Positions 38,326-49,093 of a stretch of 64,000 bases of DNA are shown in pieces (position 1 is the stretch's first letter; every line of letters starts with the position of its first letter). The notes under the pieces were generated by a model, which saw only the letters and a program-made list of their open reading frames with translations, made no database searches and was not told where the DNA came from. The position numbers and the translations under genes are program-made. The DNA lies in contig OZ260663.1 in NCBI GenBank assembly GCA_965285935.1, forward strand, positions 63,736,001 to 63,800,000. Reading direction: 5' to 3'. Source of the stretch: Ophelia neglecta (taxonomy: Eukaryota).

Positions 38326-41300
38326 ATGAAGGCTTTCATCACTTTAGCTGTGTTTTTATCGGCATTAATGCTGGTTTCTGCACAAGAAAGTAAGTAGCGA
38401 TAGTTATTTTAATACTTTCTAGTTTATAAACATGTATATGGCTGAAACGCTTCATGCGCGACTTTTGATTTTAAGCTTATTTTTTAAATAAGAAATGTCT
38501 TTTAAGATACCCGTCATTCGCTTGTACACACGCCCGAATTCGTTAAAATTTGCTCACTAAACATGTGCGTTTAAACTATATTGAATGATCTTTTCTCGTT
38601 TTGTCCACTGCTTTGCTAAGTACTCTATTCCACACAAATTCTTCCCGAAAATGTGAAAAATTGTGAGCAATCGCGAGACAAGTCTACATATGTACAGGAA
38701 ATATTTGTATTTATAATCTTGGGAATAATATTAAATGGGATATCTGCAAAAGAGTTCATGAGTATGCATACCTTAAATTGATCCTATAGCACAACATTGG
38801 ACATATATTTCATATTGGCCTGTTCATTTGTATTATTGTTTTTCATGCAGGGTTTTAGGTACCATATATTATATCTATGTTATTATGTAAAACATAAAAC
38901 ATGCAGCAAGTTATAAAGACTTATTTTCGGATGGCTTCGCTTTATTGGGTTTAACTCTTCTCGAGACCTGTGAATGAAATAGGTCTATACCTGCATATAT
39001 TATATATATATATTTATGCAGCATGCTTGAAAGTAAAAAATGGCTGTATTCAAAGGTGTGTTACATTATTAAAAATAATCGATTTTTATAATATTGATGT
39101 CCAATATCTGACAAATTGTGCCGAAAAACTTCACAGTATACAAAAGCACAGAAAACAAAAATTCAAGTGTTAAAGGCCTAGACGGTTTTCTTTTAGCCCA
39201 TAATGGTATATAACGTAGGTATAACAAATTCATACTTAATAATAAACTGAGTTAAAACATCATATGTTTTGATCCATGTTACCACCTCAAAAATCGGGCC
39301 TCTAACCTATATATATTTTATATTTTATTAGTGTTTAGTAAAGCTGATTTATATTCATTCAGTTTAAAATCTTATCAATTAAATTCAAATAATATTTATT
39401 GCCGTGAAAGACAAAGTAAACTTGTACATTAGCTATTATATCTAAATATGATACCAAACGTCACATAACAATGAGAGTTGGCCAGGAGCTGCTGTGAAAA
39501 TGAAAAATGAATTTCATTTTTTCTTCTTTAAGTGGTAAAATCAAGCTACGGGTTACGGGCAACTTGTTTTATCATACGACTTCTTCCGTATACAATTAAT
39601 CCATATGCTACTAATCCATATCTAACTAATAACTTACTAGTATTCAAAATTGAAATATTGGCAGTGTACTGTTTGTTGCGTTTAGACAATTAATGTCACA
39701 CCTAAGTGCTTGTTAATTCTCAGTACGTAAATCCAATATGTGCATTGATGTATCATGCTTCAACTGTACATGCGTTAATTAATGCAAATAATATAGTAAA
39801 GCCATGTATACATAGGCAAATGAAATCAGGGAAAATAAACTAAGGCCATTGTTTGTTAGAACTGTGGTTTGCGTCACCAATAATGATGAATGTATATACA
39901 TTATACATGCATGTACAAGGCAGGCAAGGAAAAAATAACACGCACAGAGAAGGCATACATTTTAATACAAATTACCCGTGATAAAATTTCGAATATTTCG
40001 AAAGTCTAATGGGGCTACTTGACCAATTGTTTTGTGTGTGTTAGAACATTTTACACCAAGTGCACTGGAGTACAGAAGCGCGTTTAATGCAAACCCCATT
40101 TTTAACAAACATTGGCCTAAGCTGACTAATTAAACAAAGCACACGATACAGGTAGGCCACATTGACATGCATACACATTTCTCAAGTACTGACTTGCCTT
40201 GTTCGCTTTGTCCTTGGGAAGGACTTGAATGGATATTTGTTACCGGTGAAGGGTATATGAGACATATGTATCGAGTGCCTGTTTAAATTTCGCAACATGT
40301 GTTTGTCCATTCAACCTTTAACTTTGAAACTCTAGGCAAATACGCATCATCATGATATGATATATATCTTGCCAAGAGTATATTTTCAGAGTACATTTGA
40401 TTAATCTTGAGAACACCCGTGCATAAAATGAATCCCAATGGTGATTTATTGCTTTAAAAACATTAACCGGAACTGCCAAAGCACGGCGTATTGTTTTAAA
40501 AACATTAACATAATTTCCAAGCAAAGAAAGGCGAAGTGATTTTTTTTACGGCAGTTCCATGTTCTTTTATTTCGTGTTTTCTGAAGGGCGCAAGAAGGGG
40601 GAGGTGAAGCCTATTTCTTGTCAATTAACATGCCCATGCAGTGAACAATGATATTATCGACATACCTTTCAGTCATTAAATTCCATGATTTTTTTAAACA
40701 ATTTATGGATTTACAAAATATTGAGCATTTGCCTAAACTGACAAGCGACCGATGGTGCAAACGTCTTTCTCCAAAAAGAGAACTTCATGAAGAAACAGAG
40801 CTCCTGGTCCGTTTATTTCAGTCACACTACCGATATAGACACCAAACACATGTGTAGCCTATGTCACAGCTGTAGAATATTGTAGCAATATTGTAAAAGT
40901 AAAGTGGAACGTGTTCGGATAAAGGCTCAAAGACAACGGACGTTGAGAAGGTTAACTTAGCAATGCAAGTAGATGAAACCGAGAATAATATAGAAATATT
41001 GGCTACAGAAGGTATTGCAGTCATATTAGCCTGTAGCTAGTAGTGATATGTTCCAAAGGCTTAGTTCAAGGAATAAATCATTTTTTGAACATCAACATAG
41101 TTCATATTGTTTATGTAAAGCAAGCCAATATTGGTTTTATTGCGTTTTTTTCTGATAGGTTTGATTAAACCCTTTATATTTGGATCTCGAACACACTGTG
41201 CATCTCGGCCACGTTGGTGTTGATTTGAGTATTTATAATATATTCTGGTAAGCGCAAGCAATGAGAAATTCCTACTACTCCATTAAATAAAATAGTCTTC

Positions 41301-42047
41301 CTTGCTTCAGTATAGTTGTCAAGAACTTCAAAATGTGCATAGTAATGCGCATTAGATATTGGCCATAATATTTATCAAGAAAACATCATATTCGTCTTAG
41401 ACAATAAGAAGAATATCCTACTGAAGTGTGATTCTTGTTACTACTGACCACACTAGTCGCGGCGAGAATAACATCAGCTCAAGCTATAGACGACTGCCAT
41501 GGAATGGGTGAGAATAAACCGATAATGCAGGTGCTACCTTTCTGAAACCAATGAAAAGTCAAAAACCAATGAACGAAGCGAGCATAATATGAAAAATCGA
41601 TGAAGGAAGGAAATATAATTTTTATTCGGCTTATCACGTGAAAGGGGTTGACCAATCACACCATTGTCTCATTTGTACATACGTAATAAACTAGTAACGT
41701 AACACTGAGAAGCGACAAAAGCCATTTATTATACCAATACTTACGGCTAGATCTGTGTTTACATATAAATGTATAATAGTAGGCCCTTAATTCAGCGCTT
41801 TTATATACACTAAATCGCGATGGCAATTGCTTAAAGCTAATATTGAGCTTACTTGCACATTCTTTTCTTGCTTAGGTCTTGCCAAAATGCTACAATTGCT
41901 TTTTTGCTTGTAGGTATCAGGGCGAGGGAAGGCATGAATATAGGTTTGCACATTGGTATATCCCTGTTGCTGTGCTTCTCAATTCTGACCATATGTGTTT
42001 TGGGAGTCAACTTTATCAAGAAAAGATTTGTCAAAGGGCAGCCTTAG
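38326..42047 (+). CDS. Small signal-peptide single-pass membrane protein, copy A (family unassigned)
   Basis: Signal exon 38326-38389 MKAFITLAVFLSALMLVSAQE+A|gtaagt (64 nt, phase 1). Candidate phase 1-1 mini-exons at 41478-41507 (or 41457-41507) and 40961-41011. TM exon 41914-42047 (G)IRAREGMNIGLHIGISLLLCFSILTICVLGVNFIKKRFVKGQP*. The middle exons are uncertain. Confidence 0.7.
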
Positions 42048-42834
42048 GAGAAGTTCTTAAAGATGGAATCAGCAATAACATATGGACCACAAACTATCTA
42101 CACAGGATGTAAATATGCAAAGCAAGACTGCCCTAGTGTTTGCTAAGAAACACCAAAGACATTCTATATTTAAAAGCAGTTTGCTCTCGTTCATCCGATG
42201 CATGCTTCTGCAATAAGGCTACATGTTTTTGTTTTTTTTGTTCCTTTGCCTCACGTGGTTCCAGTGGATGTGAATTTTGGATGGCAATTTAGAAGTATTT
42301 TCTGCGGTTATTGCGGAAGTCATCACATTTCACACTTAGTAGAATGAATATAATACTCAAAAGCTGAATGTTTTCTAGGCCTATATATCTCGAGAATAAA
42401 TCTTACAATGTTATTTCAGAATAGTAATACATCTAGAGAGCAGTCCCACTACGAAAGAATAACATGTAATAAAGTCAGTTATAAGAAAATAATGACGGAC
42501 CCATGATTATTATTCACATGGCTACATATTAAATTATACAATTTTTCTCATGACAAACTGTATGTCTGTGGTTCGTGTCTATAAACAGAATTTACACCAA
42601 ACTATTTCATTATTAACTTCTACTAAAATTTGCAATAAATGACAGTTATATTCGAAATGCCAGTTCTCCTCTCTTTATTACCCAACTGGTAAATTACAAT
42701 TGCCAGGCACTACAAGTACGGGTAGGTGTATTTTTCTAAGATGTATGTGCGCTTTGTGCCTATAATTTTTGTCTGGAGTAGCTTTGCTTTGTGGTTTAAG
42801 CTGTTAAAATTGAATGCCGCTTTTTGTGTTTGAG

Positions 42835-43357
42835 CTGAAAATGCACCACAAAGGAGTCTACACAATGGTAAGTCATTTTTGCTTGTTGAGTAGGACTCGA
42901 ATACTATTTTTCAACATCACTGTAACGGTGAAAATCTTTGTGCAGGTTTAAAAAACTAAAACCGATGAAAATGTTTTGTTTAATTCATAAATATAATGTA
43001 GATCTACAGTCAGAAATGATTGGCGGAATTGTTTTTTGCTAGATCTAATTTTGCTTTTTTTTAGTCATGGGAAAAGATCTTTCTGCAGATATGAAAAATT
43101 GCTCTAGATCCTGTACTGGTTGTAGAAACTGCATTTTTAAATTTAACTACACCTTTGAAAAAAAAGTATTAATGGAGAACTTCCTTTTAGGTCATGACCC
43201 TAGAGCGGGCTGGCCAGTTTGGCAGAACCTTGCCATTGCTTTGGGAATGTGTTATGGCATACTGGCAACCTGTGTAATTGGAGTAAACTGCATTACCAAA
43301 AACTGTGTGAAAGAAGAAATGAGAGCTGCTTATATGAGGGCCCCGATCAGTGACTAA
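42835..43357 (+). CDS. Paralogous TM module, copy B (mini-exon plus TM exon; no own signal exon found)
   Basis: Candidate mini-exon 42835-42867 (xENAPQRSLHN G|gtaagt; unusual GAG acceptor). TM exon 43191-43357 (G)HDPRAGWPVWQNLAIALGMCYGILATCVIGVNCITKNCVKEEMRAAYMRAPISD*, aligning without gaps to copies A and C. Confidence 0.65.
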
Positions 43358-44949
43358 ATACAAGAATATCAACATTGTCTTCTAGGAGCTACATTTTTAA
43401 GTGCTACAGCTGTGATCAGCCAATATCATGAAAATAGATCATCAACTCTAATTCCCATCTAAGGATTATGGACTGTGCCCTCACAACTCCAGAAAATCCG
43501 AGTTCCCCAGTGGACACCCATGGTTATGTATGCAGCTTTCTATATAATACAATAGAGCAACTGTGGTAAACCAACACTTTTTTGGGGGAAATTGGACAGT
43601 CTGAACTGTAACACATCTGTTGCCAAAACTACAACACAGGAGAAATTAATCCCAGAAAAACAAAGACATGATAATAATATGTAATCCAGTGTTTTTTATT
43701 TCAGTAATTAATACCTTTGGCAATGTAAGACAAAACATGTGACTTAAAGATCATTTTACAATACTACAAATTGCTTTGTGCCACTATTATGGAATTTTGT
43801 TCAGATTACATACTGTAAAATGGAGAATTAACACAAATCTCATATTGAATTGAAAATTACAACAAATCTCATTTTGTATGATTCCAATAGGCCATGATGT
43901 TAAAAAAAAGGTTGTTATAATGCCTTGTAACATGTATTAACAATTTCATCATAACTTTAACATAAAAACACAAAACATTTTGCCAAGTATCATTTGTTGA
44001 TTGTTCATATCAGAGGCTGATCATATTTTCATTGCTGCAGCCTTAGCTGATAATGTACAGTATAACTTTTTGTTCATAACTGATGACACTGTCGCTTAAT
44101 TAACAATAGAGTAAATAGGGATTAGTGTACCAGTGCTATGTATTTAATAGTGACAGTACTGGTGATATGAATTTATACACCTCATTTTGAACAGTTCTTC
44201 CCCAATAATGTAAACATTGTAAATATAAAAGAACACTGACAAATAACTATACAATCTACAGTTAATGAATGAATTAAACATTAATTTAATAAAATCTGAC
44301 AAAAAATTAAAACTACTAGAAAACCTGTGCCAATGGATGAGTATTGCTGTTGCTGGCCATCTTAAAATTGCATTTTTGTTTTTCAACTTAACACTGCCTA
44401 ATATGACCAAAAGTTTGAAAGAAGTACATATAACAGCAAACATAAAATGCAGCTGGGAGACGCAACAAAATATTGAAAAATTTCAATATTGAATTTACAG
44501 AACATTTTTCGAGCAGCAACGACAGCTGTGTTAGATAAAACAAATATGAGATAACTGTTGACGATTGGGTGAGCATTGGTACAAGAAACAGCTGTGTGAT
44601 TAAACAGATCTTCTTCTAATATAATGAAAGTTCAGAGATTCCTATATTAATTAGTAGCCAATGTTTGACAAAAAACATATAAACTTGTTGATAATTCCTA
44701 GATTGGAAGTGGTTTAAACATTCCTTTGAGTGCAAGTCCTTATAGCTAAAGTTCTGAAAGTTGATGTTTTCTTTATTCTGCATCTTTGCCCGTACGTACA
44801 ATGACTTCCTGTTTTTCCATTATTGTCGGTCGAAGGTTCCAGGACTTATTCAAGTAGGACTCCCTCATGGTATCTTTCAACAATCTATTTTTCTATTATT
44901 TCTTTGAAATCTATGTAGATCATGCACCCTGATGTGAATGGGAGTAGAG

Positions 44950-46958
44950 TTAATGAAGGCCTAGTTTTTTAGCACACATCCTTGTGATAACATTTACACC
45001 TATGGCGCATGTAGCTAGGATTCCAAAACATATCACAAGAGAAATGCCAGCATGCATTCCCACATTCATTCCTTTGTGGACATCTATGCCTGAAAAAAAA
45101 AGTTAATTATAACTGTCAATTAACTAGCCTTGACTATCAAAAAGTAGTCTGTTAAGATTCAATTTTCACAAGGGTGTTTAAACCTCAAGCATTACTGTGT
45201 AAAAGGTTCTAATTAATTATCATATTTCTACTGATTTGTAAAAAAGCACCCCCAAATTTAATCTTCAACTTCCAACAAGACAAGATTTTGTATCCAATGT
45301 CAGTGAGTTGTGCATTTGCACAGGGTCGCATCCCAGAGCTGGATAATCGCCGAAATGGCAGCACACTAGATGCAGTTGTAATGCATTAAATATGAAAAGG
45401 AAAAGCCAATTTTCAAGTCTTGACACCAGACTACATCACAATGAGGTGTTTAAATATGATTTGGAATAATTTAGCCAAACAAATGGGTGAGTTATAGTTG
45501 TTTAGAGCGGTTTGGTTGAGCAAAACAAAATTTGTTTGAAATGGTCAACCACCCATTTCATGCACTAGTATAGAAAACAGCAAAATACGGGCACCACTGG
45601 CAGATACCACAAAGCTTGGGGTACACTATCTCAAATTTAGACCAGACATTGCACATCTCTAAAAAGAAAGGCTGGTGGGATGCTCTACAAGATTAATTAT
45701 TGCTGCGCAAAAACCTAGTGTAACTTGATCTAGCAATAAACAACATCGACATTAGATCAACCTTCAGCCAAATACCAATATAGATTATCCACATGTATTA
45801 CCTCACCTTAATTAAGAAATATTGGTTAGGTGTGATAATATAGGGGAAGTGTCCATCTTACCTTTACCCCAATAAATTTCTAGTAGCTTTATATAGACTA
45901 AATACTTGGCTCAGGCTGCAGACATTAAATTAGGAATTTAGAATACTTCAAATAGAATATTTGTCAAAGATCATTGTAAACTATCTATTGTAAACAACAA
46001 TTATAAGTTTAAAGACGATAACTGTGGTAATTTTGGCAAACATTCTCTCCCTGTATAGCTTTTCTACTACGACCCTCAACCAGATATGGCTTGACAGAAA
46101 AAATATGATTCAAGTTCCCCAACACCTTCATGATCATGCGGGTGTATTTAAAAGGGGCAACCACGGCAAATCAAGGGCAACCACGGCTAAACCACTGGAT
46201 ATTAACCAAAAACAGCAAGGTATTAGGGCGAAATGCTTCAGGATTGTAGCTGAAGTTATTTTTGAATAACTTGCTGAGCAATCGGGCCATTTAGTAGCAA
46301 AAAATCGAGCTAACTTGTTCTCCGTTGTTTACGGTTGATCGCGGCCATGACACCTGCACATCCGGGGCAATCATCACCAGAGGGCGTGTGATGTCGTGTC
46401 ATGGCCGCGATCTAACGTAAACACCGGAGAACGGGCGAACAAGTTAGCTCTTTTTTTTGCTACTAAGTGGCCAGCAAGTTATTCAAAAATAACTTTAGCT
46501 ACAATCCTGAAGCATTTCGCCCTAATACCTTGCTGTTTTTGGTTAATATCCAGTGGTTTAGCCGTGGTTGCCCTTGATTTGCCGTGGTTGCCCCTTTTAA
46601 ATCCACCGTGATCATGCATCTACAGGTAACATCATGCCCTATATCGAGTGAAAACGTAAACCAAAACTTCTTTTCACGTTTTCTCATCTACAATTCGTGC
46701 ACTTCATGACCTTGTGAAATATACCGTTGTGAGCACTCAAATCAAAAGTATTTACAGATCTAAATTAAACATTATAAACAGGTATGCTTACTTAACAGAC
46801 TTTCAAGATAAAACCCCCAACTAACATCGAACCAACCCAATTCACGACTGCAGTCATGGGTATGCATCTTTTCGGGCAACATTTGAACACTTACTCTCCT
46901 GTCCGAAGACGCAAATTAAGCCAGCAAGGAAAATGAGGACACGGCAAACAGACTCCAT
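44950..46958 (-). CDS. Small signal-peptide single-pass membrane protein, copy C
   Basis: Signal exon 46958-46895 MESVCRVLIFLAGLICVFGQE+A|gtaagt (64 nt, phase 1). Possible mini-exon ending at 45862. TM exon 45089-44950 xIDVHKGMNVGMHAGISLVICFGILATCAIGVNVITRMCAKKLGLH*. Not in the ORF track. Confidence 0.75.
46139..46608. mobile_element. Foldback MITE, 470 bp, 8-bp target-site duplication (hAT-like)
   Basis: Arms of ~210 bp are near-perfect inverted repeats around a ~45-bp spacer. Flanked by direct repeat TGATCATG (46131-46138, 46609-46616). Subterminal GGCAACCACGGC occurs twice per arm. Confidence 0.9.
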
Positions 46959-48187: not shown

Positions 48188-49093
48188 ATGGCAACAGAAG
48201 ACGAAGTTGACGTTGATGAAAATGTCACCGAACAGAAAGGAAAAAAGGTAGCAAAGCACGACTCGGGGGCAGCGGACCTCGAAAAGGTGACTGATTACGT
48301 TGAAGAAGAAGAAATATCACCACACACCATCGGAGATGTAAGTACAGAAGATAATATATCTTGTACCCCCTTTATCGCCCACAGTTTCCGACATGTGCTA
48401 GGTACTTGTATTTATAAAGCCCAGCGAGCAAGTGACTAAGATCTTTTGTTGTCTGCAGGCTATTAAAGTTGTGAGTGAGAAGCAATCCTTAGAAGCTGCT
48501 GCAAAACAACAGCGAGAAAAGGAATTATCCAAAGTTAAAATCAATAAAGAAGATGTTGATTTGATAGTAAGTCATATACAGTGAAACCTGCCCATAAAGA
48601 CCACCTCTATGATCAGACCACCTGCCAATTCAGACCATTAATAGAAGGACCATAATGTATACTTTCAATGTTAAATAACCTTTCTAAACAGACTACCTCC
48701 AAAATCAGACCACTATTGTTCAGTCCCTTGGGTGGTCTTAACGCACAGGTTTCACTGTAGCTAATAATCTGTACCTGTACCTGTGCTGAACAAGATCCCT
48801 ATGATGTGACATTTGCATTGACAAAAATAGTTTTTTGTCAAATTTCATAAGAAGAAATAAGAAATTCATGTATCAGAGTGTCAGTTAAACATGTAAAAAA
48901 AACATATATATAATAACAATATCTGTATTCGATACCAGTTACTTCCTAGTTTCCTTGCAGAATTAATACAAGTACTTTCTGCTTTCAACTGTTTCAGGTG
49001 CAAGAGATGGAAATACACCCAACATTAGCAGAGAGAAAATTACAAGAACACAAAGGAAATGTTGTAGAAGCATTAATAGAACTAACCAATTAG
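48188..49093 (+). CDS. HYPK: Huntingtin-interacting protein K, 117 aa, 3 exons
   Basis: Exons 48188-48337, 48459-48566, 48998-49093 (phases 0,0): KHDSGAADLEKVTDYVEEEEI...REKELSKVKINKEDVDLIVQEMEI...HKGNVVEALIELTN*. Confidence 0.96.
48579..48757. mobile_element. Tc1/mariner-pogo-type MITE in HYPK intron 2
   Basis: TA|CAGTGAAACCTG ... CAGGTTTCACTG|TA, with internal AGACCAC repeats. Confidence 0.85.

Follow-up and report, generated by a model that had tools for sequence, protein, structure and literature searches.

A cluster of small exons in the genome of Ophelia neglecta probably encodes a conserved group of unnamed spiralian type I single-pass membrane microproteins, for which a function by packing of the membrane helix is proposed; the probability of this reading is estimated at roughly three in four. 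The cluster lies in a stretch of 64,000 nucleotides (nt), hereafter the window (assembly GCA_965285935.1, contig OZ260663.1, positions 63,736,001 to 63,800,000, forward strand). It comprises two convergent genes, A and C, which are predicted to be complete two-exon genes, their structure being established by comparison with the mRNA of a relative, and a third terminal exon, B, located between them. The window is AT-rich (about 36% G+C) and belongs to an assembly of 762 Mb in 223 contigs. The sequencing runs for this species are three DNA runs from one sample, from which all variation data derive, and natural full-length orthologues were used in place of spliced window products.

Exon structure and selection

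The exons that define the cluster are the following.

38326-38389, + strand: gene A, exon 1, signal peptide; MKAFITLAVFLSALMLVSAQE plus the first base of a Ser codon, 64 nt, donor gtaagt, phase 1
41914-42047, + strand: gene A, exon 2; (S)IRAREG...VKGQP and stop, encoding the ecto stub, the transmembrane helix and the basic tail
43191-43357, + strand: B terminal exon; (x)HDPRAGWPVWQN...PISD and stop, with a W-P-V-W motif in place of the glycine motif
46958-46895, - strand: gene C, exon 1, signal peptide; MESVCRVLIFLAGLICVFGQE plus one base, 64 nt, donor gtaagt
45089-44950, - strand: gene C, exon 2; (S)IDVHKGMNVGMHAG...KKLGLH and stop, the stop codon ending the exon at 44950

Gene A thus spans 38326-42047 on the + strand with a predicted product of 65 amino acids (aa), and gene C spans 46958-44950 on the - strand with a predicted product of 67 aa. 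The two signal-peptide exons of the window share the same length, the same donor and the same phase 1, and the pattern CARGARAGTRAG finds zero-mismatch matches in the window at these two exons only. The three terminal exons all begin at an AG acceptor in phase 1, and the codon split at the A and C junctions joins an A to GT or GC, giving Ser. Most of this layout had already been put forward in a sequence-only reading of the window, whose translations of three paralogous terminal exons, common phase-1 acceptor and two 64-nt signal exons ending in QE plus one base before gtaagt were all reproduced, with AG present at each acceptor. Two details required correction: the leading Gly given to the terminal exons is a read-through of the acceptor, the spliced codon being Ser, and a product size of 70-95 aa is replaced by the values given above. 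The three constrained terminal exons have only two signal exons to serve them, so that a count of three genes is at most possible.

When the family profile is run against the whole genome, C is recovered with an E-value of 4.5e-23, B with 2.3e-16 and A with 3.4e-16, values that exclude chance. No fourth copy was found in the 762-Mb genome by protein search or profile search. Contigs C7 and C9, considered as further copies, gave E-values of 0.3-0.4 and contain stops, and were taken as noise.

The structure of gene C is the most directly documented. A search with the C exon alone returns proteins of 67-71 aa, the best being P0001 (67 aa), which reads MESVLRVVVFLAGLISVFGQE-S-IDVHKD..., that is, signal exon, Ser and terminal exon in continuity, as in a spliced gene C orthologue. 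In nucleotide alignments (blastn), the mRNA contigs L005-L008 match 46962-46894 and next directly 45089-44950. In other words, the 1.8-kb intron of gene C is missing at exactly the predicted junction 46895/45089, because intron-less contigs align across both exons. The contigs encoding P0001 originate from three JGI records and one Logan run, four samples in all, which we take to be Tara Oceans metatranscriptomes. Gene A has a comparable counterpart in an A-type transcript from one of these same samples (L016, encoding P0037), which reads MKSWVGLAVFLQAVLLVAAQE-S-INPREG...CVKVIP. Its signal part is 62% identical to the A signal exon, and its junction sequence CAG GAA AGT ATC encodes QESI, the same junction as predicted for gene A. 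The full-length orthologues and the mRNA contigs therefore match the models of A and C, in agreement with the earlier proposal of small type I proteins built from a signal exon and a transmembrane exon.

Each terminal exon was also compared with its closest orthologous sequence, using the proportions of differing synonymous (pS) and nonsynonymous (pN) sites and the distribution of differences over the three codon positions.

C against the relative's orthologue: pS 0.77, pN 0.06, differences by codon position 4/2/24, third-position excess p=2e-7
A against L016: pS 0.88, pN 0.28, differences by codon position 13/10/30, third-position excess p=4e-4
B against the L005 exon: pS 0.84, pN 0.26, differences by codon position 12/12/29, third-position excess p=1e-3

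In all three orthologue pairs pN is far below pS. Low pN and the excess of third-position differences indicate, therefore, that all three exons are coding sequence under purifying selection, with replacement change in A and B proceeding about four to five times faster than in C. Compared pairwise with one another, A, B and C show a pS of about 0.9, which is saturated, and a pN of 0.31-0.37. In the DNA runs, the sole variant listed in the C exon (44989) is synonymous by reading. The prospect that these exons are frames left open by chance in non-coding, AT-rich DNA is negligible: the open reading frames (ORFs) are indeed short and the species is represented by DNA runs only, but profile E-values down to 4.5e-23, orthologous mRNAs, the codon-position pattern of substitutions and conserved synteny all speak against it.

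In a phylogenetic tree, built on 44 shared columns, a small number that gives weak resolution, each window exon falls with sequences of other species. Specifically, C groups with P0001-P0010 with a branch support of 92 in the Shimodaira-Hasegawa-like approximate likelihood ratio test (SH-aLRT); A groups with P0036, P0037, P0043 and P0050 (SH-aLRT 85), which have in common the ending IK[KR][KR]CVK..P; and B groups with P0075, P0106 and P0056 (SH-aLRT 97), with the common motif [WIV][PA]VWQ. Judging by these groupings, A, B and C are three old subfamilies, each with orthologues in other species.

Family range and predicted protein architecture

The family extends well beyond the window. An alignment-based search gathered 33 member proteins, and a profile search of 1.84 billion representatives returned at least 86 clusters (50% identity) at E <=0.001, with 34 at E <=1e-10. 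Members are nearly all 43-110 aa long and consist of a signal peptide, the core QES[IV][ND]xxEGxNVGMHAGIAL.ICF.IL......VN and a basic tail. Many of them are bare genomic ORF calls that start with G[IV][ND], i.e., with the same acceptor read through; the intron position is therefore widely conserved. In addition, a signal exon of about 64 nt ending in QE, with a phase-1 intron in the Ser codon, is found in A, in C, in Paralvinella (L010, where it occurs twice) and in the B-type genes of L012 and L013, while no such exon of its own was found for B. Annelid members, all uncharacterised, include LSH36_1234g00008 of Paralvinella palmiformis, NP493_1060g00019 of Ridgeia piscesae and DgyrCDS9006 of Dimorphilus gyrociliatus. 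Equally uncharacterised members occur in flatworms, among them CLF_107517 of Clonorchis, FBUS_01419 of Fasciolopsis and entries of Rodentolepis, Mesocestoides and Echinostoma; the flatworm forms differ from the window exons by an ectodomain insert of about 15 residues. An intron-less C-like copy, P0019 (64 aa), was also observed at L022:240-434, on a 12.7-kb genomic contig where it adjoins fibrinogen-domain ORFs; it arose either by retroposition or through loss of the intron.

No established family accounts for these proteins. Pfam scans with the three exons and the 33 members gave noise only, the family profile retrieved 0 chains of the PDB at E 10, the protein atlas held no match at >=0.85, and a literature search by member accession numbers found no paper citing them. 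The family is thus undescribed, yet it is already in databases as uncharacterised proteins and its general architecture is known. In this sense, the earlier statement that no known family can be assigned holds for Pfam, PDB, atlas and literature, and has to be tempered by these database entries.

A, B and C all match the family profile over the terminal exon, whose most conserved positions are G6, N8, G14, L24, V31 and N32, to which the QES at the mature N-terminus must be added. In particular, the helix opens with a GxxxGxxxG motif made up of G6, G10 and G14. The three subfamilies diverge at the border motif and in the tail. The two membrane Cys residues that had been regarded as a family hallmark are present in 61% and 29% of weighted sequences, and do not qualify as such.

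Three lines of evidence, the pattern of conservation, the bias in charge and an AlphaFold2 model, support the predicted type I single-pass build. In the family alignment, the leader varies in its hydrophobic core but has small residues at -3 and -1, and the QES that follows is nearly fixed; such a combination is typical of cleaved signal peptides. Lys and Arg residues average 0.5 in the outer 12 residues versus 3.7 in the tail, which fits the positive-inside rule with the N-terminus out and the C-terminus in. AlphaFold2, run on P0001 with the family alignment, models a helix at 2-18, a loop at 19-30 and a helix at 31-64, with a mean predicted local distance difference test score (pLDDT) of 83. 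Since the N-terminal segment is itself modelled as a helix, it might be thought to stay uncleaved, yielding a two-helix hairpin membrane protein. This is very improbable, as the segment is free to vary while the QES directly after it is nearly fixed, and residues of V/A/G type at -3/-1, a length of 18-21 residues and a short charged start are classic traits of cleaved signals.

Several known small membrane proteins offer useful comparisons. The closest in build are the FXYD proteins, regulators of the Na,K-ATPase. Like the present family, they are small and of type I, their ectodomain is short and a motif marks the border of the membrane; the helix contains small residues, and the basic tail has a Cys next to the membrane. 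They act by packing against a pump helix. The border motif of the present family is, however, GxNVGMHAG, where FXYD proteins carry the FXYD motif. Membership of the FXYD family (PF02038) was rejected: none of the 33 members matches at E <=10, and the FXYD motif is absent from the alignment. The atlas look-alikes, namely MAP17/PDZK1IP1, SMIM24 (PF15807), TMEM213, SMIM3 and DAP10, are also microproteins of type I that combine a signal peptide with a single helix; their scores of 0.75-0.84 lie below the level of kinship, and the tails of the present family are much shorter than theirs. Membership of the MAP17/SMIM24 family (PF15807) was set aside in view of the lack of a Pfam match and an atlas score of 0.75. 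A further lead was the schistosome tegument antigen Sm13/Sh13, a flatworm protein with a signal peptide, one helix and unknown function. Sh13 has 104 aa, an ectodomain of about 60 residues, a helix at 80-101 and only 3 cytosolic residues (PMC1523344). The lead was rejected on the architecture described there, and it is by this description that Sm13 is set apart; moreover, the primer-derived ends of Sm13/Sh13 (QSGPSPIN..., ...VYYHLQKS) do not fit the flatworm family members.

A mode of action can be sketched on these grounds. The signal peptide, ending in [AG]-Q-E, would target the protein to the endoplasmic reticulum and be cut ahead of the Gln, which, once exposed, could cyclise. The mature protein would then have some 10 residues (QESINVHxG) outside the membrane as a stub, followed by a single uninterrupted helix of about 34 residues. 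This helix would bear GxxxGxxxG at the membrane border and a conserved stripe of L17, F21, L24, V31 and N32, and the protein would end in a basic tail in the cytosol, with a Cys close to the membrane. Such a protein may act by packing its helix against other membrane helices, either those of a larger membrane protein, which it would serve as a small auxiliary or regulatory subunit, or those of its own copies in a homo-oligomer. A helix-packing role is put forward because the build resembles that of FXYD-like subunits, kinship not being the basis. By this analogy, the specific role of auxiliary subunit is a tentative suggestion, held at clearly less than even odds. Glycine zippers are common in homo-oligomeric channel formers, and the GxxxGxxxG at the start of the helix, together with the conserved Asn near its end, could accordingly be read as the signature of homo-oligomeric pores or membrane-perturbing bundles of the glycine-zipper type rather than of subunits of another protein. 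The B type, however, is conserved despite missing the second and third Gly, and the helical periodicity is marginal, so that this alternative is considered unlikely.

The B exon and its possible 5′ partner

On the comparisons given above, B would be an old third paralogue type with a terminal exon under coding constraint. What it is spliced to in O. neglecta is a separate matter. Intact signal exons were sought for B in the window by pattern, by a scan for ORFs followed by a donor and by DNA alignment, and only those of A and C were recovered; looser scans between A and B found no exon ending in QE. The same signal-exon scan, applied to the comparison loci, recovered the true signal exons and no others. 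B-type genes of two other species (L012 and L013), in contrast, have their own 64-nt signal exon, ending in CAAGAAA before the donor gtaag; the introns measure 0.47 kb and 3.2 kb. Neither a word search with B alone nor a scan of metagenome contigs with the B-type alignment yielded a match.

One further stretch deserves mention in this context.

42741-42867, + strand: possible relic of a B-specific first exon, unproven; hydrophobic ORF start and strong phase-1-compatible donor (ATG before gtaagt)

This stretch is broken by an in-frame TGA at 42831-42833 and is without the QE ending. Its DNA similarity to the L013 B-type signal exon is not significant (score 23, shuffle maximum 24), and none of the variants in the DNA runs falls on the TGA at 42831-42833 among the 40 of 61 sites listed.

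Three models of B can be considered. The one ranked as most likely, although held at a little under even odds, is that B is an alternative last exon spliced to the signal exon of A. It is possible, with a lower probability, that B is an orphaned exon: a B-type gene, once composed of two exons, would have lost the signal exon in this lineage and would now be untranslated or in decay. This would be in line with the own 64-nt signal exons of L012 and L013, set against a window with none for B apart from that of A, with the resemblance of 42741-42867 to a first exon disrupted by an in-frame TGA, and with the fact that spliced B-type transcripts were not found in the databases searched. Against decay, the reading frame of the exon is open throughout and the family core is preserved (E 2.3e-16), third-codon-position differences dominate in the comparison with the orthologous exon (pN 0.26, pS 0.84), and the exon bears no variant among those listed in the DNA runs, despite a variant-rich bubble (6/139 nt) just upstream. 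Being open, constrained and devoid of listed variants, the B exon implies that any loss would have to be recent. The bubble itself, at 43054-43192, consists of two contig versions in the DNA runs with 6 differences over the 139 nt upstream of B; it is heterozygous and ends at the B acceptor.

Less probable again, and rather unlikely, is that B is a stand-alone unspliced gene, starting either at ATG 43172 (61 aa, with N-out insertion without a signal peptide) or at ATG 43067 (96 aa). The frame is open for about 46 codons 5′ of the acceptor, with an estimated chance of about 0.03 from base composition, and in-frame ATGs lie close upstream both here and in the relative. On the other hand, the acceptor AG and pyrimidine tract are intact, the 96-aa form has 7 Lys or Arg residues ahead of the helix, against the N-out topology of the family, polymorphism is high in the 139 nt upstream of the exon, and in other B-type genes the terminal exon is joined by splicing to a signal exon.

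The relative also carries a B-like exon (L005:1723-1881, minus strand), located at the 3′ end of a C mRNA contig and retaining its acceptor AG. As a separate observation, the 3′ untranslated region (UTR) of this C-type transcript, at least 1.57 kb long, runs antisense over the B-type exon, so that the convergent genes overlap at the transcript level.

A number of points weigh against the reading of the window as a cluster of functional microprotein genes, or against parts of it. The junctions are known from transcripts of relatives, this species being covered by DNA runs only, and the A-to-B splice is a conjecture. The B-like exon of L005 keeps its acceptor AG and is therefore transcribed there only as the antisense of the C 3′ UTR, and the B-type database entries are all unspliced ORF calls. 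Two other species have a B-type gene with its own signal exon, and its absence here could reflect gene loss. Moreover, the conservation period of 95-100 degrees is marginal (permutation p=0.05), and known families give no functional hint, Pfam, PDB and atlas being all negative.

A more ambitious picture would bring the several strands together: one signal exon would feed the alternative terminal exons A and B, the antisense C 3′ UTR over B would couple their expression, and the products would be spiralian-specific glycine-zipper auxiliary subunits required by a conserved membrane machine, with three ancient subtypes kept as a convergent cluster. Taken as a whole, this combination is improbable. 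If its shared leader were real, the same leader would deliver two different membrane helices.

Gene order and significance of the family

The surroundings of the cluster add a further element of conservation.

48188-49093, + strand: HYPK gene, head-to-head with gene C; matched exon parts 48260-48340, 48456-48572 and 48992-49093

Compared by tblastx with Paralvinella L010, the HYPK of the window shows 81%, 64% and 76% identity over three exons; Paralvinella HYPK carries PF19026 (UBA_HYPK), for which the window has a partial Pfam match. In Paralvinella the order is HYPK, a C-type gene and a convergent second paralogue, the mirror image of the window, and the signal exon of this second paralogue, MKAVLYLLVVLQSLLMVSCQE, has 64 nt and is similar to that of A. 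The head-to-head arrangement of HYPK and C and the convergence of C and an A-type gene are therefore shared with Paralvinella by comparison. Ridgeia also has a convergent pair. In this species, L021 contains a second convergent member, similar to P0108 (13607-13476 and 15681-15609), which may use a 73-nt first exon, MICIAILLSVLLFVQEWQVALTQR, without the QE ending; this would be a variant leader.

The intron of gene C contains, at 46141-46607, a near-perfect foldback; its arms of 136 nt show 99% complementarity, and inner arms are also present. In the DNA runs its summed contig depth is about 50,000, versus about 25 in the flanks, and contigs of these runs also connect 46139 to 46626, pointing to an allele that lacks the foldback insertion. 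The foldback looks like a very abundant, still polymorphic repeat similar to miniature inverted-repeat transposable elements (MITEs).

Gene finders routinely miss very small membrane proteins, and the database entries of this family are for the most part transcripts without a name or bare ORF calls. Sequence alone yields no function, so the value of the finding is moderate. What emerges is a long-conserved family under selection, with three old subtypes and a gene order kept across annelids, which is transcribed in marine plankton samples. The definition of the family provides annotators with a model, in which the residues of note are QES, GxxxGxxxG and the Asn at the end of the helix. The family reaches, moreover, parasitic flatworms, in which surface membrane proteins have practical interest.

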